Below are positions 785 through 64,000 of a stretch of DNA of 64,000 nt, in pieces. The stretch covers positions 1-64,000 of the forward strand of contig NW_022985740.1 of NCBI RefSeq assembly GCF_902459465.1. The letters are read 5' to 3'. The notes under the pieces were generated by a model, which was not told the DNA's origin, ran no database searches, and saw nothing but the letters and a program-made list of their open reading frames with translations. The position numbers and the translations under genes are program-made. Origin of the DNA: Asterias rubens. Lineage: Eukaryota. The first letter of the stretch is position 1, and each line of letters begins with the position of its first letter.

Positions 785-3365
785 ATGGACGTTCAGCGTG
801 GACATTGCTGACGTTGTAAGGTTCAACTGGAACAGACCATTCACTGTCCTGATTGCAAGATGGCGGAGTATTGTAGCTCAATATGTGAAGAAGGAGACAG
901 AGCTAGACATATGAGTAGAGAGTGCCCATTATTTGGAACAAGATCATGCAAGAAATGCAAAAAGAAGGGTACAATGAAAGATGTATGTCTGCTTTAATTT
1001 CCATCATTATCCCCTAATCATTTACAAAAAAGGCAATTTACATATAATGCTCTGTTGATTTTGTTGCAAAAGAGAGGAATCATTCTCTAAATGTATTGTA
1101 AAACGAAACTTGGCAAATTGTTTTACTATGTTTCTTACTTAAAGGCAGTGGACACTATTAGTAATTACTCAAAATAATTATTATCATAAAACCTCACTTG
1201 GTAATGAGTAATGGGGAGAGATATTGATAGTATAAAACATTGTGAGAAAGGGCTCCCTCTGAAGTGACAAAGTTTTCGAGAAAGACGTAATTTTCCATAA
1301 ATTTGATTTCGAGACCTCAAGTTTAGAATTTGAGGTCTCGAAATCAAGCATCTGAAAGCACACAACTTCGTCTGACAAGGGTTTTTTGTTTTTTCATAGT
1401 TACCTCGCAACTTTGACGACCAATTGAGCTTGAATGTTCACAGGTGTGTTATTTTATGTTAATGTTGAGATACACAAAGTGAGAAGACTGGTCTTTGACA
1501 ATTACCAATAGTGTCCACTGTTTTTAAGAAATGTTGTTGTCTCTTGCATGCATGTCATGTAAAAGCTAGAAGAGACTATAATCAGAGTTCTAGAGGTACA
1601 CTTGCACAAAAACTAGGAGGAGGATTCATAACGAAGAGATTTAAAATTACACATGGAAAAGTAACAAATTCTCCAACAGAGAGTTGATATATTTTATTCT
1701 GCTATAATGTCTTTTCAGTGTTCAGGTTGCAACCATGCATGGTACTGTAACAGTGAGTGTCAAACAAGTGATTGGGCCAATCATGAGGAGGAATGCAAGG
1801 AGAAAAAGGCAAGAACAAAAAGAGCAGCAGAAGATTTAATAGAAGAATACATTGGTATGCGTACTGACAGACTTGATGATTTCCCTTATTATTTTGGAAA
1901 CTGCATCGCCAAAGACTTCCTTCAACTTGATAACAATGAATGGTCTGATGGGTCAATATAGAAAACTGACTTGAACAGAGATTTTCATATTTTGTCAGCT
2001 GGTTGCGGAGACTTACGCAACACTGTTTTGACTATTGCTTCCCTTCCTGCCAAGTACCAGGGAAGTCTTTACATCACTCTCAATGACTTTGACCCTTTTG
2101 TCATGGCAAGGAATGTCTTATTTCTCTTTATGTTGGTTCGGTTTGCAGACACTGAGGGAATTGAGAGCAGTCTGACTACCATCTGGTACTCAGTTCACAT
2201 TGCTAAGAAAGAGTATGACTTGATCAAGACCAGCTTAGATGAGCTCATTCAGATGACCCCTCAAAGTCTCACAGAGGACTCTCAGATGACCCCTCAAAGT
2301 CTCACAGAGGTCACTCAAGGGTTGGTCAAAGTTAAAGATAAAGATCTTTCAGTTATGAGTCAAGTTTGGAACAAATGGAGATCACTAGAATGCCAACGAG
2401 GGGAACCATCCTCAATCAATCTCAGACAACAAAGACAAACTGTACTTGATGAATCAAAAAAAAAAATTGAACAAGAGCAGGGTAAGGGCAATCATTTAGA
2501 GTCATCCAGTGTTGAAAAGCAAATTGAAGAATGGTTTGACCATGGGATGTTCCTCCCCAAAGAAGAAAAACAAGAACTAATGTCATTTGATAATCCGACA
2601 CTAACAGGGCGTGAAGTTGATCACGATATCACTAAAAACCTGAGCCCAAAGGATCATGCCTTTGTGTACTGTGTCCAAGCAGTTTTACATCCCTTCAGAG
2701 TGTGGGATTGCTTGAGAGTGAGGAAGTTTGATACCAAACCCTACCCAACCCCTATGGAAATGTACCACAATTATATCACAAATCTCCTAAAGAAGGTAAA
2801 AAGTTTCATCCAGAATCGAAGACTTTTTATTCAAGTGTCACTGGCCAATTGTATGGACTTTCCTTCAGTACATAATGCTCTGAAGATGCCAAACTATGAT
2901 CGCATCTTCACATCCAATATTGCCGACTATGTTGGGCTTGCCAAGCTCCTGCAAGACTTCAAACCACTTCTTAATTCTAGTAATCACTACTCAGTACTTA
3001 TTACTGAGACAATGATCTGGGCACAATTTCTATTTAAATCATACTGCCTGCACACAGGCATGAATTATGATGACCTTAAGAAAAATTTGGGACTCCATAA
3101 CTGGATGGACTACTTAGATAATGCCCCTTACTTTGTTGGCTATCTGCGTGCACAAATCATGGCAGGGGGTCTTGGGATACTACCATTGACTAATGTGCCA
3201 TCATTTGAAGACGTGATGAAGTACAATGGTCTAGAAATGCGTGACTTTCGTAAGAAGCAGAATCGTCTTGTTCCATTTCAGTATCGAGTGAATAATCGTG
3301 ATTTGACCCTGATCAATGTAAATGACAGAGCAGTGGAGTGGTGTCTGCCACACACTGATGGCTAA
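785..3365 (+). pseudogene. Copy 1 (type A): double-MYND Zn finger + DUF4470-like gene, pseudogene
   Basis: Exons 785-982 (GAT|GT) and 1719-3365 (CAG|TGT), phase 0. TGG>TGA at 809-811 (W9*) and AAG>TAG at 1959-1961 relative to paralogs. In-frame 33-nt duplication near 2249-2310. Confidence 0.9.
1143..1523. mobile_element. MITE family A (Kolobok/piggyBac-like, TTAA target) in copy 1 intron
   Basis: TIR AGGCAGTGGACACTATT(A/G)GTAATT, TTAA on both sides, internal hairpin GATTTCGAGACCTCAA...TTGAGGTCTCGAAATC. Confidence 0.85.
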
Positions 3366-3485
3366 GTTCAAAGAAGTTTGACATTTAACTTAGATCGATA
3401 TCTAATCTAATCTAATCAGGTGCATGGACAATGTAGATCTAACTTGACTGACATAACTGTCAAGGAATATTTAATGAGGATTTAA

Positions 3486-3834
3486 AGCCATTGGACCCTT
3501 TCTGTACAGAAAAAAAAAATTCACAGATTTACAAATAACTTACAGGGTTTACAGAAGGTAGTGGTGAAAGACTTCTTTTGAAATATTATACCATGAAATG
3601 CTTTACTTTTTGAGAAACAGTCAAACAATATCAATTCTCGTATGGATTTATTTTAAACACATGTCATGACACAGCGAAACGTGCGGATACAAGGGTGGGT
3701 TTTCCCGTTATTTTCTCCCGACTCCAATGACCGATTGAGCCTAAATTTTCACAGGATTGTTATTTGATATAGAAGTTGTGATACACAAAGTGTGGGCCTT
3801 GGACAATACTGTTTACCGAAAGTGTCCAATGGCT
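3486..3834. mobile_element. MITE family B (TTAA target)
   Basis: TIR AGCCATTGGAC(C/A)CTTTC, TTAA flanks. Homologous empty site at ~8630 (AGGATTGAAGTGGTAAATG). Confidence 0.85.
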
Positions 3835-4170
3835 TTAAGTGGTAAATGTGGATTGAAGTAGTTTTTAGCTTTAAATATAGATATAGAGCTTGTAAGTGCT
3901 TAGCACACAAATCAAATTGTGTTTCCATCCAAAAGCCTCAAAAGTATGCATGGCACCTGGGTCATTCAGTCACATGCAAGTTAAAATTTCAGCCAGCTAA
4001 TTGTTTGATTGTTTTGGGGGTTTTACTAAGAAGCATTTGTGTGTTTGATTGTTTTTCAGTTGATTGCTCAACTGTTTTGGGGGTTTTCAAAGCATTTTAT
4101 TGTTTTATACAAAATGTTTAAAGGCAAAGTATACTTTTAAAAAGTATACTTTGCTATTAAATATTTTGTA

Positions 4171-4276
4171 ACAATAACATCAAAGTCTTATATAGCGCAC
4201 GTACCAACCAAACAAGGTACTCAAGGCGCTGAGTATATACAAACTTTCAGAAAGATAGGTTATTGCAGTGATGAAT
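4171..4276 (-). mobile_element. Short L2/CR1-like or SINE 3' tail (also near 36200-36310 and 56970-57080)
   Basis: Minus strand reads CAGCGCCTTGAGTACC...GGTACGTGCGCTATATAAGA with a TGTTAT tail. Absent from the homologous flank at ~13650. Confidence 0.4.
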
Positions 4277-6119
4277 AGCAATATCAAATCGTTCCTGTAC
4301 ATTAGTTGAAAGAACTTGATTCATTACTGTTAGCTTAAGTTACAAACACTGCTTGTATGTAAGTAAATACATGTATTAACGCTTTATTTGGAATAAACAA
4401 AGAATTTTGTAAGAATGTGTAAAAAAGAATGCATCATGTACAATCAAAATAAAAGCTGATCAAAGAATTAATACATTGCAGCTGTTAAAATTTTGTGACA
4501 ATTGTGCCATTCCATCTTGTTCACCAAAAGTGTATATGCATATATATTAAAACAATATTCATAAATACCAAGGATCCATTCTGTATGGTCGAGAGGAGAT
4601 CACATGGGCATGTTTAAATGTGTGAAATAAACATTGTGAGAAGTGTTTCAACATAATGCGTGGCATGCAAGAATTTACAGGTGCTTATACTTTGCTTCAT
4701 GCCATCAATACAGACTGGTACTCTGTACTTGGTAAGCATCGAGTATCACATTTAATTTGACCAATTTCAAAGTGGTGTCCAAGGATGCGACAGAAAATGA
4801 AATTGTACAGTTTTTCTTTTTTGGGGGGGGTGGGGGGGGATTTTCTATCATTACCACACTTTTTAATAAAAAGAACAATTATGAATGGAAATAAAAAAAG
4901 TGGTGCCACAGTACTTACTAGCCGTTTAAGAACCTGCAGGCTCATGGCTAGGGATAAAGGAACTTGCCTTCAACTTGGTCCGTTATGAAATGGCTATGAC
5001 CCTGTTGTTTTAAATGGTTTGAACCCCACTCTTTTATTACCATATTAAACAAAAATAAGATCAAATGGGAACTGTTTTGCAACCCTAGGTGGCAGCAGAC
5101 TTACCAGGTGAATCCATTGTTCTAGACAAATATATAAGCATGCTCAGAACTACATAAACAATGGAAGTTTACCCAGTAAATCCGCTGCCCTCTACCATCT
5201 CAAATTAACATTCAGCCTATCACAGAATTCTTTTTCAATTATACTAAAATTCTAAATGGCTATTGAGGATGGCTTCAAAACTGTAAAAATCATTTATTAA
5301 TTGCTGTGAACTACTTGTAAATGAATGTGCAGTACCCGGTAGGCCTTCTCCTAGTACTTTTCAAACACTACACAGAACAGTGAACTTGAAAGTGCTAACT
5401 TTACTGCTGGAAAAAAAAATTGACAACAAAATGAAGAATGTGTTTGGTAATGGACAGTTACCCTACTGTGGCCTACTTCGAAACCATAAGCCCTTTTGAG
5501 GTATGGCGGAAGTGATTTGGTTTGTGTGTAGCACGAGCGTCACCCGCGGCGACTGATGCCACGCTCACCATGTTGGTGGGCAATAGGTTTACGTTCTATT
5601 TCTATGGTCAATAGACCAATCTAGGCACGCACCGTTGAGCACCAGTTCAACTTTTGTTGTTGTTGCTGGATTAAAAACATTGACAACAAAGTGAAAAATG
5701 TGTTTACTTCGAAACCATGGCTTGGCTTCAGCTATCACGTAGGATCACTCAGTTATTTTGAAAACATGCCATTTCAGTATGGAACTTCAAATAGGCAGGC
5801 AGAGCACTGCAGCCAGAGCCAAAGCCATATGTTTATATTATATTAAAAGCCATTGACTCCAAAAATGGTGCATCAAGATTATTGTGATGATGACATCAGT
5901 TGCCACCCTTGGCTAGAGGTAAAAAAGAAGGCTGCTCCTGAAGTGTTTGAGTTACATTTGCTGGAAGTGTTCATGCCAGCTTCTAACTTCTTGTGTTTAA
6001 CTTGATTATTCATATCTTGTGTTGTATTTCCTGTAAGTGAATTTGCTTCAATTTTGATTTGTGAATCAAATTACTTTATTTTGTGGTTTTAAATACTGGA
6101 ATAAAAGGGTAGCAACAAG

Positions 6120-6233
6120 TTCTTAATCGGCCTTTTAAAACCAACTGGGTCGTGGCCATGCGATAAAGGCCCAAGCCGTGGGCCTTTATCACACGGCCAC
6201 AACCCTGCAAGGTTTTAAACGGCCGGTTAAGAA
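6120..6233. repeat. ~114-bp foldback/hairpin element
   Basis: Outer arms TTCTTAA(T/C)CGGCC(T/G)TTTAAAACC and inner arms GATAAAGGCCCA/TGGGCCTTTATC. Second copy at 58949-59062. Confidence 0.75.
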
Positions 6234-7324
6234 TGAGTCACTACTCTTTTATTCCCATTCATGAATCCATGTGCGAGTCCTGGTACTGACAGCCCTAACT
6301 TTGCAAGCTTTGCTTCTAAATTGTCACGGTGTATGTAAGAAGGACTGTTTAATGGTTTGTTTTGATTCTCAATGAAGAGTTTTTCACTAATTGATCTTTG
6401 AACTACTGTGTAGTGTGTTTTAGTTCAGATCAGTTTTGGGTTTGCTTTAAGTTTGTTTTATAAGAATCATCTATTTGAATAAAAGTCTTTGAACAGTAGG
6501 AAATCAAAACAGACAATAATTTTGTGTGCATCTGTAGTGTCGTTTAAGTTTACCCTCTATTGATCTCTGTGTGAAACCACACCAAATATCCAGAGGTTGG
6601 ATTATACAACATTATTATTATTATTTCACTTAACCACAGCATGCAAAAGAAAGATCAAAACTTCTTTTGTGCCTTTACCTCCTAGAGTCAGGCAATTTCA
6701 AAATGCGGGACACTTACATGATGAGATCATGTTTTAAACAAACGCCTTGCGTGCAGGAGCTAACTTACATGTATGCACAAAGCAGTCAATACATAGGCTG
6801 GTTGTCAAATTGAAAATCTGTTAGTATGCATGCGCGCGCATGCACAGCCGTAGTTGTAGCATGCAGTAGACCCTTCGCAAAACAGAGCCAGAAGAAGCGA
6901 CAGAAAATGAAATTGACAGGAAAGTTTTGAAGATTTTTTCATCATTATTACGCTTTTTAACATAAAGGGTTTTATGAATGGGGAAAAGAGTAGTAATTCT
7001 GTATAACCGGACGTTTAAAACTTTGCAGGGTCATCCCTACAAGAGAGGAACTCACTGTTCAAATGGAAACCTTTTCGCAACACTAGGTGGCAGCAGACTT
7101 ATTAGGTAATTCCATTATTCTAGACAGAGTGTGCACATGCTCAGAGCTACAGAAACAACGGAATACTACCTGGTATGACTGCTGCCAGGTACCATCCCAA
7201 AGTTACATTGAGCCTAGCAGAGAAATTATTCTAAATTATATTTCAAACTGTCTAAATCACTGCCTCAATAAATTCAAATGTATTTTCCTGAAGTGGATTT
7301 CTTAAAAAAGAAAGAACAAACTAT

Positions 7325-7610
7325 TTGAGCGTTCAGGTTTTTCGAGGACATTGCTGGCTTTGTAAGGTTTATGTTGAACAGACCATTCATCATCCTGATT
7401 GCGGAGATGTGCAATTCAGTGTCTTAACTGCAACATGTCTTTCATTAATTTGCGTACAGTTTAAAACCAAAGGTCATTACCAGATAAAATTGATCCTTTG
7501 CATATGGGCAATTCCATGCATTTCAGTATCGAGTGAATGCTCGTGATTTGACCCTGATCAGTGCAACTGACAGAGCAGTGGAGTGGTCTCTGCCACACAC
7601 TGATGGCTAA
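7325..7610 (+). pseudogene. Fused relic: degenerate exon-1 start (7325-7411) and the last 92 nt of exon 2 (7519-7610)
   Basis: Translates as VQVFRGHCWLCKVYVEQTIHHPDC and FQYRVNARDLTLISATDRAVEWSLPHTDG*. Followed by a type-A-like 3' flank. Confidence 0.85.
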
Positions 7611-12608: not shown

Positions 12609-12976
12609 GCATCTTGTTCACCAAAAGCGTATAAGCATTTTACAATAATATTCATAAATACACGGGATAGTTTATCTATTCTGATTGGTCGAGAAAAAAT
12701 CACACGGGCATGTTGAAATGTGCAACAATGGTGGGAAGTGCATTTTAACAATGGATGGTATGCAAGAATTTGCAGGTGCTTATTTATGCTTCATGCAATC
12801 AATACAGATTGGTACTCTATTATTAGTAAGCGTTGAGCATCGCATTTAATTTGACCATTCTCAAAATGGTGCCCAATGATGTGACAGAAAATGAAAATGT
12901 ACACTCAGACTTCATGCTCCCCCTTATTATTTTGGAAACTGCATTGGTTTTTTTAAAAGCATTCTATAGGTGTTTT

Positions 12977-13450
12977 GGTCTTAGAAGCATTAGATTGTTT
13001 GATTTGGGTTTTATTTTTGTTGTAGAAGCATTCAATTGTTTTTGGGGTCTTAGAAGCATTAGATTGTTTGATTTGGGTTTTATTTTTGTTTTAGAAGCAT
13101 TCAATTGTTTTGGGGGTCTTAGAAGCATTAGATTGTTTGATTTGGGTTTTATTTTTGTTTTAGAAGCATTCAATTGTTTTTGGGGTCTTAGAAGCATTAG
13201 ATTGTTTGATTTGGGTTTTATTTTTGTTTTAGGAGCATTCAATTGTTTTGGGGGTCTTAGAAGCATTACATTGTTTGATTTGGGTTTTATTTTTGTTTTA
13301 GAAGCATTCAATTGTTTTTGGGGTCTTAGAAGCATTAGATTGTTTGATTTGGGTTTTATTTTTGTTTTAGAAGCATACAATTGTTTTTGGGGTCTTAGAA
13401 GCATAAGATTGTTTGATTTTTGTTTTTGATTTTTGTTTTGAAGCATTTGA
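12977..13450. repeat. 69-bp minisatellite, ~6.5 copies
   Basis: Unit GGTCTTAGAAGCATTAGATTGTTTGATTTGGGTTTTATTTTTGTTTTAGAAGCATTCAATTGTTTTTGG. Its 23-codon period explains the two spurious ORFs here. Confidence 0.95.
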
Positions 13451-14159: not shown

Positions 14160-14189
14160 AATATATATATATCAAATAATATATATATA

Positions 14190-47778: not shown

Positions 47779-47822
47779 TTAATGTATTACTATTTTTTTT
47801 TCTTTGTTTCTAAGAAATAAAC

Positions 47823-50800
47823 ATGGATGTTCAGCGTGGACATTGCTGGCGTTGTGAAGTTCAACTGGAACAGACCATTCACTGCCCTGATTGCAAGATG
47901 GCGGAGTATTGTAGCTCAATATGTGAACACAGAGACAGAGTTAGACATAGGAGTAGAGAGTGCCCGTTATTTGGAACAAGATCATGCAACACATGCAATA
48001 AGAAGGGTACAATGAAAGAGGTATGTTGTGAATTTGGAAAGTTCAAGACAAGATTCTCACATATTGTCATGAATGCTGAATATAAGTCAAGCTCAATTCC
48101 TTACATCATAAAACTTAATGTGATGAATTGGGGACTATGGGCCACTAGGTGGCAGCAGACATACCAGAGTCTAATAATTTACATTGTTAAAACACTGGGT
48201 AGATTTTTGCTGTTTATACACAGAGAGCAAGTTCTAGTGCAGACATTTAGCCGACTACTGACCAGAAACGAACATGCGCAGTGACGCACTCACTCGAAAG
48301 ACTCGTTTGGAACCTTAGTCAACCATCGGTACCACTGTATTCAACACTCCATTGCCTTCTGTGTTTTCGCTATAGTACCACTGGTTCCCTTCTGCCCTTT
48401 ACACATATTAGTATGGAACAGGCTGTTGGGACCAAGGAAGAAACCATGGGCATGAGGCTGGTTCCAAAAATGGTCTACCACAGCAGTCAACCAATGGTCG
48501 ACCAGCCTGGTTTTAGTAAAAAAAAGTCAATCTTTAGTTAACCTTGGTGCACAATCGAACTTGCTCATAGCCTTGGTAGAACGCCAGTATTCTCAAAACT
48601 ACAACTAACACCCTCAGAATAAAGGGAACAAAAGTTATAAACATTTTTTCATTGGTTTACCTCATTGAAACTGAATCTTCGTTCACGTTCCTTGAATATC
48701 ATACTTGCAGACTGTCTGGTTGAACAAATCTTTAAAATGTTTTGAGCACACTTTATTTTCATAAATAAAGTGAGAATTGGAGGGTTTTAAGACATCTATC
48801 AAAAACGTCTATTTTGATGACTCTTTTTTTAATTTAAGAAGTGTATCAAACATTCTCTATATCCTATCTAATGCGCTGCTTTCTTGACGTAGTGGCACTA
48901 TACAAATGCCCTATATGTATGTTTGTATGTATGACTCTGTGTGTAAATTAATATTATGTGCATCTAATTCATGTGCATGCTAAAAAATATGCACAACAAT
49001 GCGAAAAAAGGGCACAGTCTAGAAGAATGTTTCAAAAACTTTTCAAGCACCAAGAAAAGATTTGTTTGAAGGATCGTTTTTGTCAAACCTTATACTTTGA
49101 TAGCTTTGAAATACTGCATTGAAACTTCTTTTTTACAGTGGGGAGGTTGCAACATTACATGGTGCTATTGTTTAATGTTTTCTCTGGTTTTGATAAATAA
49201 CAATTGTGATTTTTTATTGGAAAAAAATGAATACACTAACCACTTCAAAATACTATCTATTTCTTTCAGTGTGGAGGTTGCAACATAGCATGGTACTGTA
49301 ACAGAGAGTGTCAAAGTAGTGATTGGGTCAACCATAAAGCTTTTTGCATCAAGGCCAAGGAAGACATCAAATCAACAGCAGCTCAAATTGGACTATTAAA
49401 CTTCAGAATGCAAAAAGAGGGTGGTTCCCCTTATTATTTGGGAAACACTATTGCCAAAGACTTCTTGCAACTCTCTAACAATGAGTGGTCTGATGGGTCA
49501 ATAAAGAAAACTGACTTGAATAAAGATTATCATATATTGTCAGCCGGTTGCGGAGACTTACGCAACACTGTCTTGACAGCAGCTTCCCTTCCTGCCAGGT
49601 ACCAAGGAAGTCTTTACATCACTCTCAATGACTTTGACCCTTTTGTCATGGCAAGGAATGTCTTGTTTCTCTTTATGTTGGTTCGGTTTGCAGACACTGA
49701 GGGAATTGAGAGCAGTCTGACTACCATCTGGTACTCAGTTCACATTACAAAGAAAGAGTATGACCTGATCAAGACCAGCTTGGATGAGCTCATTCAGATG
49801 ACCCCTCAAAGTCTCACAGAGGTCACTCAAGGGTTGGTCAAAGTTCAAGGTAAAGATCTTGCAGACATGAGTCAAGTTTGGGACAAATGGAGATCACTAG
49901 AATGCCAACGAAAGATACAATCCTCAATAAATCTCAGAAAACAAAGACAAACTGCATTTGAGAAATTTAAACAAAAGCATGGGGATAATGTGAGGTATTG
50001 TTATACCAATCCTTTACAGTCACCTGCTGTTAAAAAGCAAACTGAAGAATGGTTTGACCATGGTTTGTTCCTCCCCAAAGAGACGAAACAAGGGACAATG
50101 TCATTTGATAACCCAACACTAACGGGACGTGGAGCTTCAGCAGCTCCAGGTTATGAAACGCTAGTTAGGGATTGGAATGCACCAAAGGCAAGCCCAAAAG
50201 ATTTTGCCTTTGAGTACTGCATCAGACCAGATTCACATCCTTTCAAAGTGTGGGATTGCTTGAGAGTGAGGGAGTCCGAGACCAGACCCTACCCAACCCC
50301 TATGGTGATGTATCACAACTACATCACAAACCTGATACAGAAAGTCAAACATCTAATTCAGCAGAGAAGACTTTATATCCAAGTTTCTCTGGCCAATTCT
50401 ATGGACTTTCCTTCAATTCATAAGTCTCTTAAGATGTCCAACTATGACCGCATCTTCACATCCAATCTTGCTGACTATATTGGTTTTGGGAAGCTTCTAC
50501 AAACATTTAAACCCCTTCTAAACCAAAGTAACTGCTCCTCAGTAATTGTTACTGAAATAATAAACTGGATTGCATTTCTACCTCAGGCTCTCTGTAAACC
50601 TGAGCACAAAGAATATCAAAGATGTATTGTAGCATATTGTCTGGATACTGGCAGAGATTTAAAAAATCTTATGCGTAAATTTGATATTGGACTCCATACC
50701 TGGATGGACTACTATGATAGTTCCCCTTACTTTCTTGCATATCTGCGTGCACAAATTATGGGCGGGGGTTTCGGGGTACCACCATTGACTAAAGTGCCTT

Positions 50801-50964
50801 CATTTGGTGAAGTGATGAAGTACAATGGTCTAGAAATGCGTGACTTTCGTAAGAAGCTGAATCGTCTTGTTCCATTTCAGTATCGAGTCAATGCTCGTGA
50901 TTTGAACATTATAACTGCAACTGACAGAGCAGTGGAGTGGTATCTACCACACACTGATGGCTAA
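47823..50964 (+). CDS. Copy 6 (type C): tandem MYND / DUF4470-like protein, 630 aa
   Basis: Exons 47823-48020 and 49270-50964, phase 0, open. Confidence 0.87.
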
Positions 50965-52551
50965 GTTTAACAAAGCTTGGCGTATATTTATTGTTGATTT
51001 CTGATGTAAATCTTATTTTAATACCCCTTAAAAGATGCACCGTCACATAACAAGCAGTGATTGAGTGGGACTTTTGAAAATCAGATAAGTCTTATACACA
51101 GGAAATTACGGTAGCTAATATAATTTGACTAAATGAAACCTGTATCAACAACTACAGTAAAAAAAAAAGTCGAATCTCTGCAACAAAATAGCTGTAGACT
51201 TGAATTTTTGTTTTGAAGTTTTTGGCTTTTGGAGAAATACAATGATGTATGCGTAATACATTAGTATGCCTGATGAATAGTGTCATTAATTGCAATTGCC
51301 TCATTAATTGCAATTGCTTAATAAAAAATTGTATTAAATTATAGATTTGGTAGCCGATTCAATACTAAATTAAGCTACACTTACTCATAATTTGTGTTGA
51401 TTGGGAGTGTAATGACGTGGCAACTGAAATAGTTTTTGGACTTGATTTGTTTATTTGCTCTATGTAAAATACTTGTTTACAATGAGTTTTTTAACTATTA
51501 ACCATGATCATTTATTAATATTAAATTGTAGTGAAATGAAAATAGTTTTACTCTGGCCGCACTGCCATGCTTTTTATGGCACCGGCCACATTTACAAATT
51601 TGAGTTTTAAAAATCAATCTGCCAAGCTTTTCTCCCAACTTTTTTTTTTAAGTTCATGCATTTTATGAGTGTTCAAATGCAATCTTTATAATTATTGGTA
51701 AAAATAGTCAGGAGGAAAAGGCAAAAAGGAACATCTCAGAACATCACCATGATCACAAAGCATGTCCAAGCAATATTTTTGTGGCCCTTAGGCAGGCCCT
51801 GGACCCCACAGAGGCACCCCCTCCCTCCCCCATCCCTTCAGTGCCGGCCAAGCTTAAATTTCTAAAACACAGAGCAAGTGGCAGAACTCATCAATTTCTT
51901 TATAGGTGCCAATGGACCAACTTCAAAGCTGAATTCATAAATACTTTTTGTTCAATACAAGAAATAGAAGAAATGACAAATGAAAACAAAGACTTTTTTC
52001 CCTTCAGATTTTCTCTTAGAAACGCTATGTCAAGCAACAAAGCAACGCTCAGTAGCATGCCTCTATCAGTGATAACCAACAATCGGATGTGGTATTGAAG
52101 CAGCATATGAGATTAATTCACATCTCTTGAACACATCTGACTCTTTTCTATGAATCTGTTGTAGTTTTTTCCTTTAAAAACAACAATAATTTGACTTTTT
52201 CCACTCAAAACCAATGATGTACCATCCCTTTAGAATCTTTCATTGTTATTGTAGTAAATTATATGGAATCAGCAGTCAATTACATGTCAATATTTTGAAT
52301 AGAAATTATTCTCATGAGACGCAAGTTACAAGCATGCTTGAATGTTTGCATAAAATTACGTAGGAAAAATATTTTGTTCAGAAAAAGTAATTATTTAAGG
52401 AATTAATAAATTAGACTGTGTAATAAGAAGGCAGTCAGTTATTGATGAGGATAAAGTGAGAAGCTGCTGAATATATGAGAATAAAATATAAAGGTCTTTG
52501 TCAATCAATTAACAATTTTCTTGATTGTTCATTCTGGCTCGACTTTGTCAA

Positions 52552-53085: not shown

Positions 53086-53625
53086 ATTTCCCAGTCACAC
53101 AAGGGAACTTCACGACATGTGTGAAGCTTCAATTCCATTTGCCACACCCTTGACATTCTGTTCAGTTCTCATTTAAACCAAACATAGACTTCTCTGATTT
53201 GAGGACTCAACTCCAGTTTTGTTTAAAGAATCATAAAAGGTGAGTACAATTTTTTTTAAACATTCGTTTTGAGGTTTTATTTTATTTTAATTAACGACTG
53301 CTGAATGTTGAATTACTTTAACTAATACAAAAATATTTGAACATATTTTCAGAATTTCTGAACTTGTATCAGAACCATACATCGAACAGTAAATCTTTTT
53401 AAAAACCTTTTGGTACTGGCAGGTAAATTTCCATTATTCCTGATCAAGATATACATAACATTAAATCTTCTAAAAAACAACTGAGAAAATATTTCAAAAC
53501 TCTGATTGATAAAATAACAATAAAACTTTACAAAATGGCCAACCAGTGACAAAGAACCAAATTTATCCTTCCAATATAGAGATATTTTGCTCAATTTCCC
53601 CTATCTTTGTTTCTTAGAAATAAAC

Positions 53626-56156
53626 ATGGACGTTCAGTGTGGACATTGCTGGCGTTGTGAAGTTCAACTGGAACAGACCATTCAATGCCCCGATTGCAAG
53701 ATGGCAGAGTATTGTAGCACAACATGTGAACACAGAGACAGAGTTAGACATAGGAGTAGAGAGTGCCCGTTATTTGGAACAAGATCATGCAACAAATGCA
53801 AAAAGAAGGGTACAATGAAAGAGGTATGTCTGCTTTAATTTCCATCATTATCCCCTAATCATTTACAAAAAAGGCAATTTACATATAATGCTCTGTTGAT
53901 TTTGTTGCAAAAGAGAGGAATCATTCTCTAAATGTATTGTAAAACGAAACTTGGCAAACTGTTTTACTATGTTTCTTACTAAAGGCAGTGGACACTATTA
54001 GTAATTACTCAAAATAATTATTATCATAAAACCTCACTTGGTAATGAGTAATGGGGAGAGATGTTGATAGTATAAAACATTGTGAGAAAGGGCTCCCTCT
54101 GAAGTGACAAAGTTTTTGAGAAAGACGTAATTTTCCATAAATTTGATTTCGAGACCTCAAGTTTAGAATTTGAGGTCTCGAAATCAAGCATCTGAAAGCA
54201 CACAACTTCGTCTGACAAGGGTTTTTTGTTTTTTCATAGTTATCTCGCAACTTTGACGACCAATTGAGCTTGAATGTTCACAGGTGTGTTATTTTATGTT
54301 AATGTTAAGATACAAAAAGTGAGAAGACTGGTCTTTGACAATTACCAATAGTGTCCACTGTTTTTAAGAAATGTTGTTGTCTCTTGCACAAAAACTAGGA
54401 GGAGGATTCATAACAAAGAGATTTAAAATTACACATGGAAAAGTAACAAATTCTCTAACAAAGAGTTGATATATTTTATTCTGCTATAATGTCTTTTCAG
54501 TGTGCACGTTGCAACTATGCATGGTACTGTAACAGAGAGTGTCAAACAAGTGATTGGGCCAATCATAAGGCGGAATGCAAGGAGACAAAGGCAACAAATA
54601 AAAAATTAGCAGCTCTTTTAAGAGAAGAATACACTTCAATGCGTACTGACAGACTTGATAATTTCCCTTATTATTTTGGAAACTGCATTGCTAAAGACTT
54701 CTTGCAACTTGCTAACAATGAATGGTCTGATGGGTCAATAAAGGAAACTGACAGGGATTTTCATATATTGTCAGCTGGTTGCGGAGACTTACGCAACACT
54801 GTCTTGACAGCAGCTTCCCTCCCTGCCAGGTACCAGGGAAGTCTTTACATCACTCTCAATGACTTTGACCCTTTTGTCATGGCAAGGAATGTCTTGTTTC
54901 TCTTTATGTTGGTTCGGTTTGCAGACACTGAGGGAATTGAGAGCAGTCTGACTACCATCTGGTACTCAGTTCACATTACAAAGAAAGAGTATGACTTGAT
55001 CAAGACCAGCTTGGATGAGCTCATTCAGATGACCCCTGAAGGTCTCCAAGAGGTCACTCAAGGGTTGGTCAAAGTTCAAGGTGAAGATCTTGCAGTCATG
55101 AGTCAAGTTTGGGACGAATGGAGATCACTTGAATGCCAACGAGGGAAACGATCCTCAATCAATCTCAGAAAACAAAGACAAACTGTACTTGATAAATCGA
55201 AAAAAGAAATTGAACAAGAGCATGGTAAGGGCCAAGTATTACGTTATACAAATCATTTAGAGTCATCCAGTGCTGAAAAGCAATTTGAAGAATGGTTTGA
55301 CCATGGGATGTTCCTCCCCAAAAAAGAAAAACAAGAACTAATGTCATATGATAATCCGACACTAACAGGGCGTGAAGCTGATCTCCCAATCACTAAAAAG
55401 CAGAGCCCAAAGGATTATGCCTTTGTGTACTGTATCAGCACGTTTTTCCATCCCTTCAGAGTGTGGGATTGCTTGAGAGTGAGGGAGTCTGAGACCAGAC
55501 CCTACCCAACCCCTATGGAAATGTACCACAATTATATCACAAAACTACTAAAGAAGGTAAAAAGTTTCATCCAGAATGGAAGACTTTTTATTCAAGTCTC
55601 ACTGGCCAATTGTATGGACTTTCCTTCAGTACATAATGCTCTGAAGATGCCAAACTATGATCGTATCTTCACATCCAATATTGCCGACTATGTTGGGTTT
55701 GCCAAGCTCCTGCAAGACTTCAAACCACTTCTTAATTCTAGTAATCACTACTCAGTACTTATTACTGAGACAATGAACTGGGCAGATTTTATACATGAAC
55801 CTAAGGACACAACAGACTATAAACCTTGCATGAAATCATACTGCCTGGATACAGACCGGGATTATAATGACCTTAACACTGGACCTTTCATCTGGATGGA
55901 ATACTTTGATAATTCCCCTATCTTTCTTGCATATCTGCGTGCACAAATCATGGCAGGGGGTGTTGGGGTGCAGCCATTGACTTATTTGCCATCATTTGGT
56001 GAAGTGATGAAGTACAATGGCCTAGAAATGCGTGACTTTCGTAAGAAGCTGAATCGTCTTGTCCCATTTCATCATCGAGTGAATAATCGTGATTTGACCC
56101 TGATCAATGTAACAGACAGAGCAGTGGAGTGGTGTCTGCCACATTCTGATGGCTAA
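53626..56156 (+). CDS. Copy 7 (type A): tandem MYND / DUF4470-like protein, 617 aa
   Basis: Exons 53626-53823 and 54501-56156, phase 0, open. The only intact type-A copy. Confidence 0.88.
53983..54363. mobile_element. MITE family A in copy 7 intron
   Basis: Same site as the copies at 1143 and 33170; left flank CTAA. Confidence 0.85.
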
Positions 56157-56276
56157 GTTCAAAGAAGTTTGACATTTAACTTAGATCGATATCTAATCTA
56201 ATCTAATCAGGTGCATGGACAATGTAGATCTAACTTGACTCACATAACTGTCAAGGAATATTTAATGAGGATTTGA

Positions 56277-56626
56277 AGCCATTGGACCCTTTCTGTACAG
56301 AAAAAAAAAATTCACAGATTTACAAATAACTTACAGGGTTTACAGAAGGTAGTGGTGAAAGACTTCTTTTGAAATATTATTCCATGAAATGCTTTACTTT
56401 TTGAGAAAACAGTCAAACAATATCAATTCTCGTATGGATTTATTTTAAACACATGTCATGACACGGTGAAACGTGCGGATACAAGGGTGGGTTTTCCCGT
56501 TATTTTCTCCCGACTCCGATGACCGATTGAGCCTAAATTTTCACAGGATTGTTATTTGATATAGAAGTTGTGATACACAAAGTGTGGGCCTTGGACAATA
56601 CTGTTTACCGAAAGTGTCCAATGGCT
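56277..56626. mobile_element. MITE family B
   Basis: Same site as the copies at 3486 and 35524. Confidence 0.85.
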
Positions 56627-58948
56627 TTAAGTGGTAAATGTGGATTGAAGTAGTTTTTAGCTTTAAATATAGATATAGAGCTTGTAAGCGCTTAGCACAC
56701 AAATCAAATTGTGTTTCCATCCAAAAGCCTCAAAAGTATGCATGGCACCTGGGTCTTTTTTTCCATTCAGTCACATGCAAGTTAAAATTTCAGCCAGCTA
56801 ATTGTTTGATTGTTTTGGGGGTTTTACTAAGAAGCATTTGTGTGTTTGATTGTTTTTCAGTTGATTGCTCAACTGTTTTGGGTGTTTTCGAAGCATTTTA
56901 TTGTTTTATACAAAATGTTTAAAGGCAAAGTATACTTTTGAAAAGTAAACTTTGCTATTAAATATTTTGTAACAATAACATCAAAGTCTTATATAGTGCA
57001 CGTATCTACCAAACAAGGTACTCAAGGCGCTGAGTATATACAAACTTTCAGAAAGATAGGTTATTGCAGTGATGAATAGCAATATCAAATCATTCCTGTA
57101 CATTAGTTGAAAGAACTTGATTCATTACTGTTAGCTTAAGTTACAAACACTGCTTGTATGTAAGTAAATACATGTATTAACGCTTTATTTGGAATAAACA
57201 AAGAATTTTGTAAGAATGTGTAAAAAAGAATGCATCATGTACAATAAAAATAAAAGCTGATCAAAGAATTAATACATTGCAGCTGTTACAATTTTGTGAC
57301 AATTGTGCCATTCCATCTTGTTCACCAAAAGTGTATATGCATATATATTAAAACAATATTCATAAATACCAAGGATCCATTCTGTATGGTCGAGAGGAGA
57401 TCACATGGGCATGTTTAAATGTGTGAAATAAACATTGTGAGAAGTGTTTCAACATAATGCGTGGCATGCAAGAATTTACAGGTGCTTATACTATGCTTCA
57501 TGCCATCAATACAAACTGGTACTCTGTACTTGGTAAGCATCGAGTATCACATTTAATTTGACCAATTTCAAAGTGGTGCCCAAGGATGCGACAGAAAATG
57601 AAATTGTACAGTTTTTTTTTTTTTTGGGGGGGAGGGGGGGATTTTCTATCATTACCACACTTTTTAATAAAAAGAACAATTATGAATGGAAATAAAAAGT
57701 GGTGCCACAGTACTTACTAGCCGTTTAAGAACCTGCAGGCTCATGGCTAGGGATAAAGGAACTTGCCTTCAACTTGGTCCGTTATGAAATGGCTATGACC
57801 CTGTTGTTTTAAATGGTTTGAACCCCACTCTTTTATTACCATATTAAACAAAAATAAGATCAAATGGGAACTGTTTTGCAACCCTAGGTGGCAGCAGACT
57901 TACCAGGTGAATCCATTGTTCTAGACAAATATATAAGCATGCTCAGAACTACATAAACAATGGAAGTTTACCCAGTAAATCCGCTGCCCTCTACCATCTC
58001 AAATTAACATTCAGCCTATCACAGAATTCTTTTTCAATTATACTAAAATTCAAAACGGCTATTGAGGATGGCTTCAAAACTGTTAAAATCATTTATTAAT
58101 TGCTGTGAACTACTTGTAAATGTATGTGCAGTACCCGGTAGGCCTTCTCCTAGTACTTTTCATACATTACACAGAACAGTGACCTTGAAAGTGCTAACTT
58201 TACTGCTGGAAAAAAACTTTGACAACAAAGTGAAAAATATGTTTGGTAACGGACAGTTACCCTTCTGTGGCCTACTTCGGAACCATAAGCCTTTTGAGGT
58301 ATGGCGGAAGTGATTTGGTTTGTGTGTAGCGCGCGCGTCACCCGCGGCGACTGATGCCACGCTCACCATGTTGGTGGGCAATAGGTTTACGTTCTATTTC
58401 TATGGTCAATAGACCAATCTAGGCACGCACCGGGCGCGCAAGTGTTGAGCACCAGTTCAACTTTTGTTGTTGTTGCTGGATTAAAAACATTGACAACAAA
58501 GTGAAAAATGTGTTTACTTCGAAACCATAGCTTGGCTTCAGCTACCACGTACGATCACTCAGTTATTTTGAAAACATGCCATTTTAGTATGGGACTTCAA
58601 ATAGGCAGGCAGAGCACTGCAGCCAGAGCCAAAGCCATATGTTTATATTATATTAAAAGCCATTGACTCCCAAAATGGTGCATCAAGATTATTGTGATGA
58701 TGACATCAGTTGAATGGGGTCAATGCGTATGCCACCCTTGGCTAGAGGTAAAAAAGAAGGCTGCTCCTGAAGTGTTTGAGTTACATTTGCTGGAAGTGTT
58801 CATGCCAGCTTCTAACTTCTTGTGTTTAACTTGATTATTCATATCTTGTGTTGTATTTCCTGTAAGTGAATTTGCTTCAATTTTGATTTGTGAATCAAAT
58901 TACTTTATTTTGTGGTTTTAAATACTGGAATAAAAGGGTAGCAACAAG

Positions 58949-59062
58949 TTCTTAATCGGCCTTTTAAAACCAACTGGGTCGTGGCCATGCGATAAAGGCC
59001 CAAGCCGTGGGCCTTTATCACACGGCCACAACCCTGCAAGGTTTTAAACGGCCGGTTAAGAA
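58949..59062. repeat. ~114-bp foldback element
   Basis: Copy of 6120-6233 in the duplicated flank. Confidence 0.75.
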
Positions 59063-60248
59063 TGAGTCACTACTCTTTTATTCCCATTCATGAATCCATG
59101 TGCGAGTCCTGGTACTGACAGCCCTAACTTTGCAAGCTTTGCTTCTAAATTGTCACGGTGTATGTAAGAATGACTGTTTAATGTATTTTGGTTTTTTTTC
59201 CTAATGAAGAGTTATTTACTAAGTGATCTTTGAACTACGGTGTAGTGTGTTTAGCTCAGTTTTTAGTCTATTTTTTTAATAGTTGGGACTGGTTTTTATT
59301 TTATTTTTTAGTTCAGATCAGTTTTGGGTATGCTTTAAGTTTGTTTTATAAGAATCATCTATTTGAATAAAAGTCTTTGAACAGCAGGAAATCAGAACAG
59401 ACAATAATTTTGTGTGCATCTGTAGTGTCGTTTAAGTTTACCCTCTGTTGAACTCTGTGTGAAACCACACCAAATATCCAGAGGCTGGATTATACAGCAT
59501 TATTATTATTATTTCATTTAACCACAGCATGCAAAGGAAGATCAAAATTTCTTTTGTGCCTTTACCTCCTAGAGTCAGGCAATGTTAAAATGCGGGATAC
59601 TTACATGATGAGATCATGTTTTAAACAAACGCCTTGCGTGCAGGAGCTAACTTACATGTATGCACAAAGCAGTCAATACATAGGCTGGTTGTCAAATTAA
59701 AAATCTGTTAGTATGCGCGCGCATGCACAGCCGTAGTTGTAGCATGCAGTTAGACCCTTCGCAAAACAGAGCCAGAGGAAGCGACAGAAAATGAAATTTA
59801 CAGGAAAGTTTTGAAGATTTTTTCATCATTATTACGCCTTTTAACATAAAGGGTTTTATGAATGGGAAATAAAGAGTAGTAATTCTGTATAACCGGACAT
59901 TTAAAACTTTGCAGGGTCATCGCTACAAGAGAGGAACTCACCTTTTGTCTGTTTAAAACTGCTGGTATAAGAATGAGTTCAAATGGAAACCTTTTCGCAA
60001 CACTAGGTGGCAGCAGACTTATCAGGTAAATCCATTATTCTAGACAGAGTGTGCACATGCTCAGAGCTACAGAAACAACGGAATACTACCTGGTATGTCT
60101 CCTGCCAGGTACCGTCCCAAAGTTACATTGAGCCTAGCAGAGAAACTATTTTAAATTATATTTCAAATTGTCTAAATCACTGCCTCAATAAATTCAAATG
60201 TATTTTCCTGAAGTGGATTTCTTAAAAAAGAAAGAAAGAACAAATTAT

Positions 60249-60335
60249 TTGAGCGTTCAGGTTTTTCGAGGACATTGCTGGCTTTGTAAGGTTTATGTTG
60301 AACAGACCATTCATCATCCTGATTGCGGAGATGTG
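60249..60335 (+). pseudogene. Degenerate exon-1 relic
   Basis: Matches 7325-7411 (VQVFRGHCWLCKVYVEQTIHHPDC). Confidence 0.8.
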
Positions 60336-60429
60336 CAATTCAGTGTCTTAACTGCAACATGTCTTTCATTAATTTGCGTACAGTTTAAAACCAAAGGTCA
60401 TTACCAGATAAAATTGATCCTTTGCATAT

Positions 60430-60810
60430 GGGCAATTCCATGGTCAGTCGCATTACACTTTTCTGTGTCATTTTTTGATCTTGGTGCTAATAGTTCTATG
60501 TGAGATACTATTTCCACTAAGTTTAAAGACTGATTTGTACTTGACACCCATGGCTTTGAATTGATGATATTAGAAATGTTGTGGGCTTTGTGCTCTGGGT
60601 GTTATAACATTGTAAAAAGCGGTCAGTCGCATTACACAAAAAGAACATGGTAAAAAATACACTAGTTACAATTCAAAAGTTTCCTCTAACTAAACTCTTA
60701 TACATGAGTATCCAACAGGATACTTATAAATGGTCAGGAACTTGAACTTTTAGGAATACATGGGAAAACCATGGTCAGTCGCATTACCGTCAGTCGCATT
60801 ACAGTTTTCC
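60430..60810. mobile_element. Probable DNA-transposon end with 14-bp repeats
   Basis: Begins GGGCAATTCCATG; GTCAGTCGCATTAC occurs at 60443, 60622, 60774 and 60789. Other end not found. Confidence 0.45.
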
Positions 60811-61641: not shown

Positions 61642-62194
61642 TATACGCAATAATTTTGTGTTCCTACGAAGTAATCTATCATAACACGTCCTTTCACTTA
61701 TGACTTACTAGTGCTACAGTACAGTTCGAAACTCGCATGTTTGACTTTCGTGTTTTCATGAAGTGACATATCTGTCAGATATATTGAAGTGTAGTGTTTC
61801 CATTAAGTGCAAGTGACTATGTGAGTGCATTGGAGTCTCTCTATTTACAAAGTCTAGGGGGGAAAAAAATATATAAAAAAATCAACATTATTTGAGTGAT
61901 TAATTATGTTCATTTTGTTTCTCTCTTGTATGTTAGAAACAAACATGGATGTTCAGCGAGGACATTGCTGGCGCTGCGAAGTTCAACTGGAACAGACCGT
62001 TCACTGTCCTGATTGCAAGATGGCAACGTATTGTAGCTCAATATGTGAACACAGAGACAGAGAAAGACATAGGAGTAGAGAGTGCCCGTTATTTGCAATA
62101 AATGCAATAAGGAGGGTATCATGAAAGAGGTATGTCTGCTCAAACCTCTATCCGCACTTCTTATTTTAAAAAGAAAATTAATAACATTGCTTAA

Positions 62195-62349
62195 AGCCAT
62201 TGGACCCTTTCGGTAAACAGTATTGTCCAAGGCCCACACTTCGTGTATCACAACTTATATATAAAATAACAAACCTGTGAAAATTTAGGCTCAATTGGTC
62301 ATCAGAGTCGGGAGAAAATTAACGGGAAAACCCACCCTTGTTTCCGCAC
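62195..62349. mobile_element. Truncated MITE family B in copy 8 intron
   Basis: TTAA + AGCCATTGGACCCTTTCGGTAAACAG..., reverse orientation, breaks off near 62349. Confidence 0.75.
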
Positions 62350-62715
62350 GGATATGACTCCTGGCCAATTAAAACTGTGGTTTATCTCTGCATTTCTCAT
62401 GAACAAGCTCCTTTTCAACACCCATGTTAGGCCATGAATACTATTCTTTACATCTATTCTTGATAATCTTATAGTCTTATCTGAAGGCAAAACAAAATAC
62501 ACTCTTCGAGTAAATGTAAATATAGCTTTAAAAACAATGAAATTATCACATAAAAGCTTATAAAATGTAACATTTTACTGTTCAATTTTTTTTAATCTAA
62601 AAAGTCATGGTTTCCAAGAGGATGCACCAGGGTGAGGGGGGGCAAGTTCATTAACTGGGCGTACACATTGAGTAAGCTAGGGAAGGGTGGTCAACACCTG
62701 ACCATCCCGCTGTCC

Positions 62716-62732
62716 ATTATTATTATTATTAA

Positions 62733-62776
<44 letters not shown>

Positions 62777-62817
62777 GCAACGACAACGACAACGACAACG
62801 ACAACAACAACAACAAC
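62716..62817. repeat. Compound microsatellite (ATT)5-(AAC/GAC)n
   Basis: Directly visible; mostly AACGAC hexamers. Confidence 0.95.
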
Positions 62818-64000
62818 ATGCGTTTTATTTACACAAAGTGTTAACCCATATACAAGCAATCATTCGTTTATTCTTTCCAGTGTGGAGGCTGCAACAACGC
62901 ATGGTACTGTAACAAGGATTGCCAGAGAAGTGATTGGGCAAATCATAAGTCGTCATGCGACAAAACAAAGGCAGCTATAGTGACAGTTGCAGCTCAATTA
63001 AGGGAGTTATATTGTACAATGCAAACGGACACACTTGGTGGTTCCCCTTATTATTTTGGAAACACTATTGCCGAAGACTTCCTTCAACTTGACAATAATG
63101 AATGGTCTGATGGGTCCATGAAGAAAACTGACTTGAACAGGGATTATCATATTTTGTCAGCTGGTTGCGGAGACTTACGCAACACTGTCTTGACAGCAGC
63201 TTCCCTTCCTGCCAGGTACCAGGGAAGTCTTTACATCACTCTCAATGACTTTGACCCTTTTGTCATGGCAAGGAATGTCTTGTTTCTCTTTATGTTGGTT
63301 CGGTTTGCAGACACTGAGGGAATTGAGAGCAGTCTGACTACCATCTGGTACTCAGTTCACATTACAAAGAAAGAGTATGACCTGATCAAGACCAGCTTGG
63401 ATGAGCTCATTCAGATGACCCCTCAAAGTCTCACAGAGGTCACTCAAGGGTTGGTCAAAGTTCAAGGTAAAGATCTTGCAGACATGAGTCAAGTTTGGGA
63501 CAAATGGAGATCACTAGAATGCCAACGAAAGAAACAATCCTCAATTAATCTCAGAAAACAAAGACAAACTGCGTTTGAGAAATTTAAACAGCAGCATGGG
63601 GAGGGCGTTAAGCATTGCTATACAAATCTTTCACAGTCACCTGCTAGTAAAAAGCAAACTGAAAAATGGTTTGACCATGGGTTATTCCTCCCCAAAGAGA
63701 CAAAACATATAGCAGTGACATTTGATAACCCAACCCTAACAGGACGTAAAGCTGTAGCAGCTCCTGGTTACGATGTTGTACCTGTACCGTGGGCTGGCCC
63801 CAAAAAGCCAAAGGATTATGCCTTTGAGTACTGCATCAGACCAGATTCACATCCTTTCATAGTGTGGGATTGCTTGAGAGTGAGGGAGTCCGAGACCAGA
63901 CCCTACCCAACCCCCTATGGTGATGTATCACAACTACATCACAAAACTCCTCAAGAAGGTAAAAAGCTTCATCCAGAATGGAAGACTTTTTATTCAAGTG

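Follow-up and report, generated by a model that had tools for sequence, protein, structure and literature searches.

The dynein assembly factor DNAAF3, or PF22, has been described as structurally related to S-adenosylmethionine (SAM) methyltransferases (Sakato-Antoku et al., PNAS 2024; PMC10835030). In that paper, DNAAF3 is given a Rossmann core with a large insert after strand 2, a glycine-rich loop and an acidic residue, and the methylation of lysine and arginine residues in the dynein heavy chains is reported to be largely lost in the pf22 mutant. A 2025 review repeats these findings, and names DNAAF3 as the one factor in dynein assembly that has an enzymatic activity. Here we compare with this system a tandem array of genes in the starfish Asterias rubens, whose proteins join two MYND zinc fingers to a DUF4470 domain, the same domain found at the N-terminus of DNAAF3. 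The stretch analyzed, hereafter the window, consists of bases 1-64000 of the unplaced 86,197-bp scaffold C70 (NW_022985740.1), with no N inside. An earlier note on this DNA had recognized the array, had proposed a SAM-binding fold for its products, and had stated that DUF4470 has no assigned function. This last statement is outdated; PMC10835030 presents DNAAF3 as a SAM-methyltransferase relative that is needed for dynein methylation, and because this was published in 2024, the idea of the fold is not new for DUF4470. Our own reading, to which we assign a probability of roughly 60%, is that the array encodes MYND-docked, DNAAF3-like SAM methyltransferases of proteins, in a gene family that expands and decays while gene conversion acts on its core.

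Copies of the gene were detected by tblastn with the longest open reading frames, followed by reading of the splice sites. This procedure yields eight copies, c1 to c8 in order along the window, all of them on the plus strand and with a common two-exon structure. Five are open, namely c2 (632 residues), c3 (630), c5 (645), c6 (630) and c7 (617), and three are disrupted, namely c1, c4 and c8; seven additional gene fragments were located by tblastn. The earlier note had counted the same five intact and three disrupted copies on one strand, at least six fragments, and proteins of 617-645 residues with identical exon structure, and all of these counts agree with ours. Exon 1 is 198 nucleotides long and begins with the ATG start codon. 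It codes for the whole of MYND1 and for the first half of MYND2, with the first of its CxxC pairs, and closes with ...ATGAAAGAG/GTATGT. The intron is in phase 0 and varies from 677 to 1590 nucleotides across copies, and the acceptor, TTTCAG/TGT, leads into a single large exon 2. The best support for this structure comes from c3, whose spliced model is identical, residue for residue, to RefSeq LOC117306597 (P0010, 630 residues).

The domain content of the proteins is simple. Every copy tested against Pfam contains zf-MYND (PF01753) and DUF4470 and no other domain. DUF4470 (PF14737) is detected in c5, c6 and c7 with E values of 3.8e-19 to 6.1e-19, and it is matched by 45 of 45 homologues. MYND2 scores 36.9-38 bits despite lacking its first 12 positions, which are encoded in exon 1. 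For MYND1 the score is 22.9-24.8 bits, where the cut-off is 22.7; its eight ligands are all present, and its spacing is H-x4-C instead of H-x3-C. The zinc ligands of the fingers (C4-C2HC) are invariant or at least 90% conserved among 51 sequences, and in the full-length model of c3 both fingers have predicted local distance difference test scores (pLDDT) of 90-97. MYND zinc fingers are protein-protein interaction modules. Single-sequence and profile searches of the PDB matched the MYND fingers only, and nothing for the enzyme domain. Membership of the MSS51/ZMYND17 family was considered and rejected: PF13824 is touched by only 2 of 45 members, with a best E value of 0.0055, and an amphioxus homologue labelled 'MSS51' (P0107) contains zf-MYND and DUF4470 only.

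The fold of the enzyme domain was predicted with AlphaFold2. The c7 exon 2 model, for which 45 homologues were aligned, has a mean pLDDT of 87.8 and a predicted template-modelling score (pTM) of 0.91, and that of full-length c3 has a pLDDT of 90.5 and a pTM of 0.92. When Swiss-Prot models were searched with Foldseek, 10 of the 10 best matches were DNAAF3, from human to Chlamydomonas, with E values of 2.6e-11 to 2.3e-6 and template-modelling scores of 0.38-0.55 over query residues 44-551; their coverage of residues ~44-450 also spans the DUF4471 region, which goes undetected in the sequence search. In an exhaustive VIA search of 48,161 PDB chains, all 50 of the top 50 rows were SAM methyltransferases, with Z values of 8.1-9.8 and alignments of 149-225 residues spread over model residues 27-551. 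In the c7 exon 2 model, strand 1 (residues 87-92) and strand 2 (115-121) are followed by a helical insert (124-358), a further strand (362-368), a block reading F/Y-D-R-I-F-T-S-N at the strand-4 position (386-393), and another strand (419-424). On the basis of these models, the array proteins are predicted to have the Rossmann fold of class I SAM methyltransferases. The SAM-fold-like domain suggested by the earlier note is borne out in this respect, in that Foldseek and the VIA search, run on the AlphaFold2 models, recover DNAAF3 and the methyltransferase fold, respectively.

The residues expected to contact the cofactor are arranged accordingly in the sequence. Strand 1 is followed by A92-G93-C94-G95, an xGxG motif I, and D121 terminates strand 2; the motifs LSAGCGD, LNDFD and DRIFTSN, from which the earlier note had argued, are found respectively after strand 1, at the end of strand 2 (that is, at D121) and at the strand-4 position. 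Among 45 animal sequences, G93 and D121 are invariant and G95 is at least 90% conserved. Once fungal homologues are added, the invariant residues are G95, R98, N120, D121, R388 and N393, and G93 is replaced by Ala, Ser or Cys.

To these likenesses must be opposed several results that weigh against our interpretation. No methyltransferase family of Pfam matches any of the 45 family members at E <= 1. Comparison by hhalign with eight starfish Methyltransf_11 proteins gives only a weak match at motif I, with an E value of 0.0012 and a probability of 20%. Weak as it is, this evidence is consistent with the fold: a second match, covering the strand 4-5 block at an E value of 0.21, is colinear with motif I and in the right register, and in the same block a distant homologue, P0177, scores 22.4 bits against Methyltransf_11, for which the cut-off is 21.2. 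Foldseek finds nothing in the PDB at E <= 0.001; its top row is an uncharacterized Leptospira protein (6ulo, E 5e-3), and the weak rows are mostly SAM methyltransferases. The VIA scores, at Z 8-10, are only modestly over the stated background of 7-8, and for this reason no single Z value is decisive; the weight rests on the unanimity of the list and on the match to DNAAF3. For DNAAF3 itself, neither direct SAM binding nor activity in vitro is reported in the section of PMC10835030 concerned. Among the youngest duplicates, pairs that include pseudogenes or type-B copies have ratios of nonsynonymous to synonymous divergence (dN/dS) of ~0.8, which suggests, from sequence comparison, that some of the 'intact' copies may already be decaying. 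Lastly, the exons of c7 were compared with four sequencing runs, stored as short unitigs and of guessed RNA status, and the exon 1-exon 2 joint was not found among the matches listed in these four runs. The c7 exons are nonetheless covered by contigs from runs of independent studies, with 0-4 differing bases per ~200-base piece, so that c7-specific sequence is present in these runs, and contigs in two runs, X1 and X2, stop matching at position 53823, the last base of exon 1, and continue with 23 and 35 letters, respectively, that are unlike the intron. These breaks at the exon 1 donor are a hint of splicing, which they do not in themselves prove.

Part of this evidence would also fit a pseudoenzyme or adaptor, that is, a protein that retains the methyltransferase fold, and perhaps SAM binding, without transferring a methyl group, and that serves as a MYND-based scaffold or a co-chaperone-like adaptor. 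Catalytic residues are not assignable in the array proteins, the first glycine of the loop differs in fungal homologues, and the loop varies among DNAAF3 orthologues too; the absence of a Pfam methyltransferase match, and of DNAAF3 enzymology in vitro from the section of PMC10835030 concerned, points the same way. On the other hand, all the way between fungi and echinoderms D121, G95, R98 and the FDRI..SN block show no variation or almost none, a pattern hard to account for unless a ligand pocket is under selection, and dynein methylation is abolished upon loss of DNAAF3, according to PMC10835030. We regard an adaptor without catalytic activity as unlikely, and retain a DNAAF3-like methyltransferase as the preferred interpretation.

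The comparison with DNAAF3 can be made feature by feature. The array proteins resemble it in having an N-terminal DUF4470 by sequence (E ~4e-19), in the whole of the globular fold (Foldseek E 2.6e-11, over ~400 residues), and in the predicted placement of the helices at 124-358 of c7, which come after strand 2 and before the core strand that follows. They differ from it in that they have two N-terminal MYND fingers, a canonical xGxG loop and no disordered C-terminal tail, in that their enzyme domain lies entirely within one exon, in that their genes are multi-copy, and in that DUF4471 (PF14740) is not matched by Pfam in any of the window proteins. That the array genes might be DNAAF3 orthologues was considered and ruled out, by this different architecture, by the presence of homologues in non-ciliated fungi, and by the existence of a separate, multi-exon DNAAF3 locus. 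The true orthologue is a single gene at C12:12594100-12602713, on the minus strand, with DUF4470, DUF4471 and at least 7 exons, and it provides the sole match to PF14740 in a whole-genome scan, at 12.594-12.601 Mb. This locus lies between the two clusters of MYND-type genes on C12, the chromosome that is common to 12 of the 14 placed MYND-DUF4470 loci.

Homologues with the MYND-fused architecture are numerous in echinoderms, namely in Patiria, Acanthaster, Asterias amurensis, the brittle star Amphiura, crinoids and a sea cucumber, with dozens of loci in Patiria and Amphiura; others are found in amphioxus, an octocoral and a prawn, and single-MYND forms exist in fungi. Because the fungal homologues belong to organisms without cilia, a cilia-specific role for this branch is unlikely. 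The fungal, prawn and amphioxus MYND-DUF4470 proteins (including those of Agaricomycetes and Fusarium, and a BTB fusion in amphioxus) match the array proteins with profile E values of 1e-37 to 1e-50 and fold E values of 1e-13 to 1e-29, and have the invariant residues in common with them; the fungal members differ in having one MYND finger and an N-terminal extension. The DNAAF3-like domain also occurs in other fusions, with BTB in amphioxus (AlphaFold DB cluster C3YH57) and with a terpene synthase in a fungus (cluster F0XDS6). One homologue, P0142, combines it with 10 tandem MYND fingers, and P0153, P0158 and P0177 are 2,300-2,900 residues long. All named entries among the homologues read 'uncharacterized', 'hypothetical' or 'MYND-type domain-containing', and searches of the literature on MYND genes in sea stars and on DUF4470 found nothing about the MYND-fused family. 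The MYND-fused DNAAF3-like branch is thus uncharacterized everywhere, in keeping with the remark of the earlier note that no animal family of this architecture has been characterized.

Two other groups of known enzymes are relevant. Class I methyltransferases (Methyltransf_11/12/23, the mRNA cap N7-methyltransferase, NTMT1, COMT and UbiG) resemble the array proteins in the predicted fold, and motif I and the acidic residue after it have the same position and chemistry in both; the FD.I.s...l.h motif of Methyltransf_11, in addition, resembles FD.I..SN at strand 4 of the array proteins. Unlike these enzymes, the array proteins have an insert of ~240 residues between strands 2 and 3. SMYD1-3, for their part, embody the same design principle, a MYND finger joined to a methyltransferase, and their MYND aligns with MYND2 of the array (in the 45-sequence profile, SMYD1 at an E value of 1.9e-9 and SMYD2 at ~9e-9). 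The similarity is limited to the zinc finger, however, as the catalytic domain has the SET fold in one case and the Rossmann fold in the other. Membership of the SMYD family was rejected, given that Pfam finds no SET domain and that the matches in the PDB cover the MYND only, at query residues 1-34.

These comparisons also bear on the nature of the substrate. The array proteins could be active methyltransferases of a small molecule or a nucleic acid, with the MYND fingers used for localization only; methyltransferases of the cap guanine-N7, tRNA/rRNA, natural-product and small-molecule kinds are among the closest folds solved, and a terpene synthase is fused to one of the fold relatives. By far the closest relative is nevertheless DNAAF3, which PMC10835030 links to lysine and arginine methylation of proteins, and MYND is a protein-binding module that is fused to protein methyltransferases of the SET type as well, in SMYD1-3. 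A non-protein substrate is, in our estimation, distinctly unlikely.

In the mechanism that we favor, i.e., methylation of proteins, the two N-terminal MYND fingers, joined by a long helix to a ~500-residue domain with the DNAAF3/PF22 fold, would dock the protein on partners that bear proline motifs. The DNAAF3-like domain would bind SAM and methylate the docked partners, most probably on lysine or arginine side chains, as has been proposed for DNAAF3. The data show the gene structure, the state of each copy, the domain content, the predicted fold, the conserved motifs and the pattern of duplication and conversion; that the proteins bind SAM, are catalytic, act on proteins and are targeted by MYND, we infer by analogy with DNAAF3 and with other proteins that couple MYND to an enzyme. 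The array itself expands as an A-B-C unit is segmentally duplicated, and it loses copies to stop codons, frameshifts, truncations and inserted transposons. Meanwhile, gene conversion among linked copies keeps ~300 nucleotides of the cofactor core near-identical, and the MYND-to-enzyme linker and several loops diverge almost neutrally.

The organization of the window reflects these duplications. Intron length, blastn blocks and the tree agree in dividing the copies into type A (c1, c4 and c7), type B (c2 and c5) and type C (c3 and c6). The three types of the earlier note thus hold for c1-c7; they do not accommodate c8, which is 84-87% identical in nucleotide sequence to each of them. Self-comparison, introns and intergenic DNA included, shows that the A units (1-7518, 32022-37993 and 53604-60442) are 91-97% identical, the B units (17994-19680 and 41211-42909) 95.7%, the DNA downstream of the B units (21292-24001 versus 44322-46993) 91.6%, and the C units (24093-28729 and 46985-51619) 96.7%. 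Along the window the copies run A-B-C, A-B-C, A, c8; because A-B-C is repeated in the same order, we conclude that a unit of ~22.9 kb was duplicated in tandem. That the genes are carried by a mobile element was excluded, on account of both this tandem segmental duplication unit and the orthologues of several types in A. amurensis.

Divergence between types corresponds to a synonymous divergence (dS) of 0.29-0.35, with dN/dS of ~0.45. Recent duplicates have dS values of 0.05-0.12; for the c3-c6 pair, dS is 0.093 and dN/dS is 0.32. When proteins of A. amurensis are included in the tree, several types pair one-to-one between the two species as orthologues, and c3/c6, c2/c5 and c1/c4/c7 appear as younger, species-specific duplicates. 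That is, the types are older than the split between A. rubens and A. amurensis. The birth-and-death evolution proposed by the earlier note is supported by the 92-97% identical segmental duplicates, the pseudogenes, the fragments and the transposons, but it is incomplete as the only process, since a conversion island homogenizes the core.

This island was delineated with sliding windows along the spliced alignment. At codons ~140-300 the synonymous difference between types is 0-0.08, versus 0.3-0.6 elsewhere, and, averaged over 15 copies, nucleotide identity reaches 97-98% within a ~300-nucleotide core, versus 62-75% in the flanks. In c7 the island lies at 54801-55100, on the plus strand, where the sequence codes for the last part of helix A, for strand 2 including D121, and for the initial helices of the inserted subdomain. 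Core nucleotide identity is 95-98% among C70 and C12:14.09-14.42 Mb, including paralogues that are only 57-64% identical as proteins; it is 86-93% in the copies at C12:10.47-10.76 Mb and 69% on chromosome C7, and for the copy on chromosome C22 a genome-wide search finds no DNA match to the core. Because core identity tracks linkage rather than protein constraint, we attribute the island to gene conversion; from the sequence comparison, gene conversion among linked copies is superimposed on birth-and-death turnover. The possibility that the island is conserved on account of an RNA element was rejected, as Rfam finds no family there.

The segments that evolve fastest are the MYND-to-enzyme linker, the insert loops and the region after strand 5 (exon-2 residues ~15-55, 230-330 and 425-475). 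In these segments nonsynonymous differences per site (pN) are near the synonymous ones (pS), and in no window is pN clearly over pS. This pattern is relevant to the suggestion that the expansion represents a defense or stress effector family. The fast turnover, the several segments with pN near pS, and the lineage-specific tandem expansions, which comprise at least 24 loci in A. rubens and run to dozens in Patiria and Amphiura, are circumstantial indications in its favor. The lack of any window with pN clearly above pS speaks against it, as do Pfam scans, which reveal no domain of immune-receptor or effector type, and the literature, where no link was found. We hold such a role to be very unlikely.

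A search of the genome assembly (417.6 Mb in 150 contigs) places the array among ~24 MYND-type DUF4470 loci. C70 has 10 copies, i.e., c1-c8 in the window and 2 beyond it, with the fragments extra; C12:14.088-14.122 Mb has 7, C12:14.417 Mb has 1 on the opposite strand, C12:10.47-10.76 Mb has 4, and C22 and C7 have 1 each. The copy number could be inflated by the assembly, if C70 were an alternative haplotype or an unplaced part of the array at C12 14.09-14.12 Mb, such that some copies were alleles. Indeed, C70 is unplaced, a 500-N gap in the C12 array (14106767-14107266) cuts a type-B-like copy, a 920-bp block of C70 is 99.9% identical to C12, and the conversion island ties the two together. 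In a comparison with 70 kb of C12, however, the best long blocks are only 95-96% identical, which is not above the unit-to-unit identity within C70 (96.7%), and the type order differs between C70 and C12; on these two grounds, we rejected the notion that C70 is a simple haplotig of C12. Moreover, the copies in the window reside on one contig without N and differ in their lesions and in the transposons inserted, C12 by itself has 6-7 tandem copies, and orthologues of several types are present in A. amurensis. Inflation of the copy number is unlikely, and the tandem array would stand even if it had occurred: the gap-free window and the tandem run of C12 make the tandem nature of the family independent of where C70 is placed. 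As core identity follows linkage, the sequence suggests that C70 belongs near C12:14.1 Mb.

The individual copies, all on the plus strand and delimited by splice reading, are as follows. Among those of type A, c1 (785-3365; exon 1 785-982, intron 983-1718, exon 2 1719-3365) is a pseudogene, with an in-frame TGA as codon 9 (809-811) and a TAG as codon 147 (1959-1961); it also carries a 33-nucleotide internal duplication at 2249-2317. The pseudogene c4 (32812-35403; exon 1 32812-33009, exon 2 33745-35403) is interrupted by TAA at 34594-34596 (codon 350). The third, c7 (53626-56156; exon 1 53626-53823, exon 2 54501-56156), is intact; in a search of 5.8 billion proteins it had no identical or >80% identical counterpart, the best being 78%, and judging by this search it may be unannotated in the public record. 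High-copy repeats are found in the type-A intron (53905-54409) and downstream of c7 (56228-56400), where summed contig depth is 1e4-1e6 versus tens to hundreds over the exons.

Of type B, c2 (16536-19701; exon 1 16536-16733, exon 2 18001-19701) is open, with the Trp of MYND2 replaced by Arg and a 177-bp repeat, in 2 copies, in its intron (17025-17378). The other, c5 (39430-42957; exon 1 39430-39627, exon 2 41218-42957), is also open, and is 99% identical to RefSeq LOC117306596 (P0003). Both lose family homology 3-4 codons short of the normal stop and continue instead into transposon-derived sequence. In c2, homology stops at 19680, and the final codons and the stop are supplied by an inserted long interspersed nuclear element (LINE), whose reverse-transcriptase open reading frame of 485 residues (19698-21155, minus strand; Pfam RVT_1, E 1.2e-37) adjoins the 3' end of the coding sequence. 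In c5, the tail after ~42915 was contributed by a dispersed ~390-bp repeat, of which the genome has at least 40 copies, on many chromosomes and at 80-86% identity; its halves, at 42924-43175 and 44080-44210, are split by a second insertion of ~900 bp.

The type-C copies, c3 (24929-28071; exon 1 24929-25126, exon 2 26377-28071) and c6 (47823-50964; exon 1 47823-48020, exon 2 49270-50964), are both intact. Finally, c8 (61945-64000; exon 1 61945-62129, exon 2 from 62881) is an untyped pseudogene that is cut by the end of the window and continues to ~64570 on the scaffold; it has a 13-nucleotide deletion in exon 1 and a 1-nucleotide insertion near 63911, and its intron contains an (AACGAC) microsatellite of 14.5 copies at 62731-62817.

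The largest fragment, at 28732-29286 on the plus strand, is the 3' third of a copy, with an open piece of 174 residues that starts MPNYDRIFTSN; the tblastn match within it covers 28732-29280. On the same strand, tblastn also locates a MYND1 piece at 7331-7417, to which a MYND1 relic at 60255-60326 is homologous, a C-terminal piece at 7521-7607, and a C-terminal relic downstream of c2 at 21633-21786, which is matched, by tblastn and self-comparison, by fragments at 29635-29790 and 44628-44786. Elsewhere in the window, a 69-bp tandem repeat (12951-13447; 7.2 copies, 94% matches) is the source of spurious open reading frames on both strands. Two tRNA-like sequences lie on the minus strand, one at 16337-16410, 126 bp upstream of the start codon of c2 and identified by ARAGORN as tRNA-Ile(GAT), and one at 14261-14333, recognized by Rfam only (47 bits); by sequence, they could be tRNA genes or the heads of short interspersed nuclear elements.

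Taken together, these data identify the array as a clean case of two superimposed processes, birth and death of whole genes and a sharply bounded conversion tract in the cofactor-binding core, with a strength of conversion that falls with genomic distance. A bolder interpretation, which we put forward tentatively and consider unlikely, is that the copies are diversifying, MYND-guided protein methyltransferases, in which a uniform SAM core is combined with a drifting linker and loops that give each copy a different client; if this were true, the echinoderm expansions would constitute a lineage-specific regulatory or defense-related methylation system with no counterpart in vertebrates. For annotation, entries now named 'uncharacterized protein' could become DNAAF3-like methyltransferase-fold proteins. 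The MYND-fused paralogues have a more canonical loop, are encoded almost entirely in one exon, and are found in lineages that range from fungi to echinoderms; for these reasons they may be easier test material, and may thereby help to examine the DUF4470/DNAAF3 fold for SAM binding, methyl transfer and MYND targeting.

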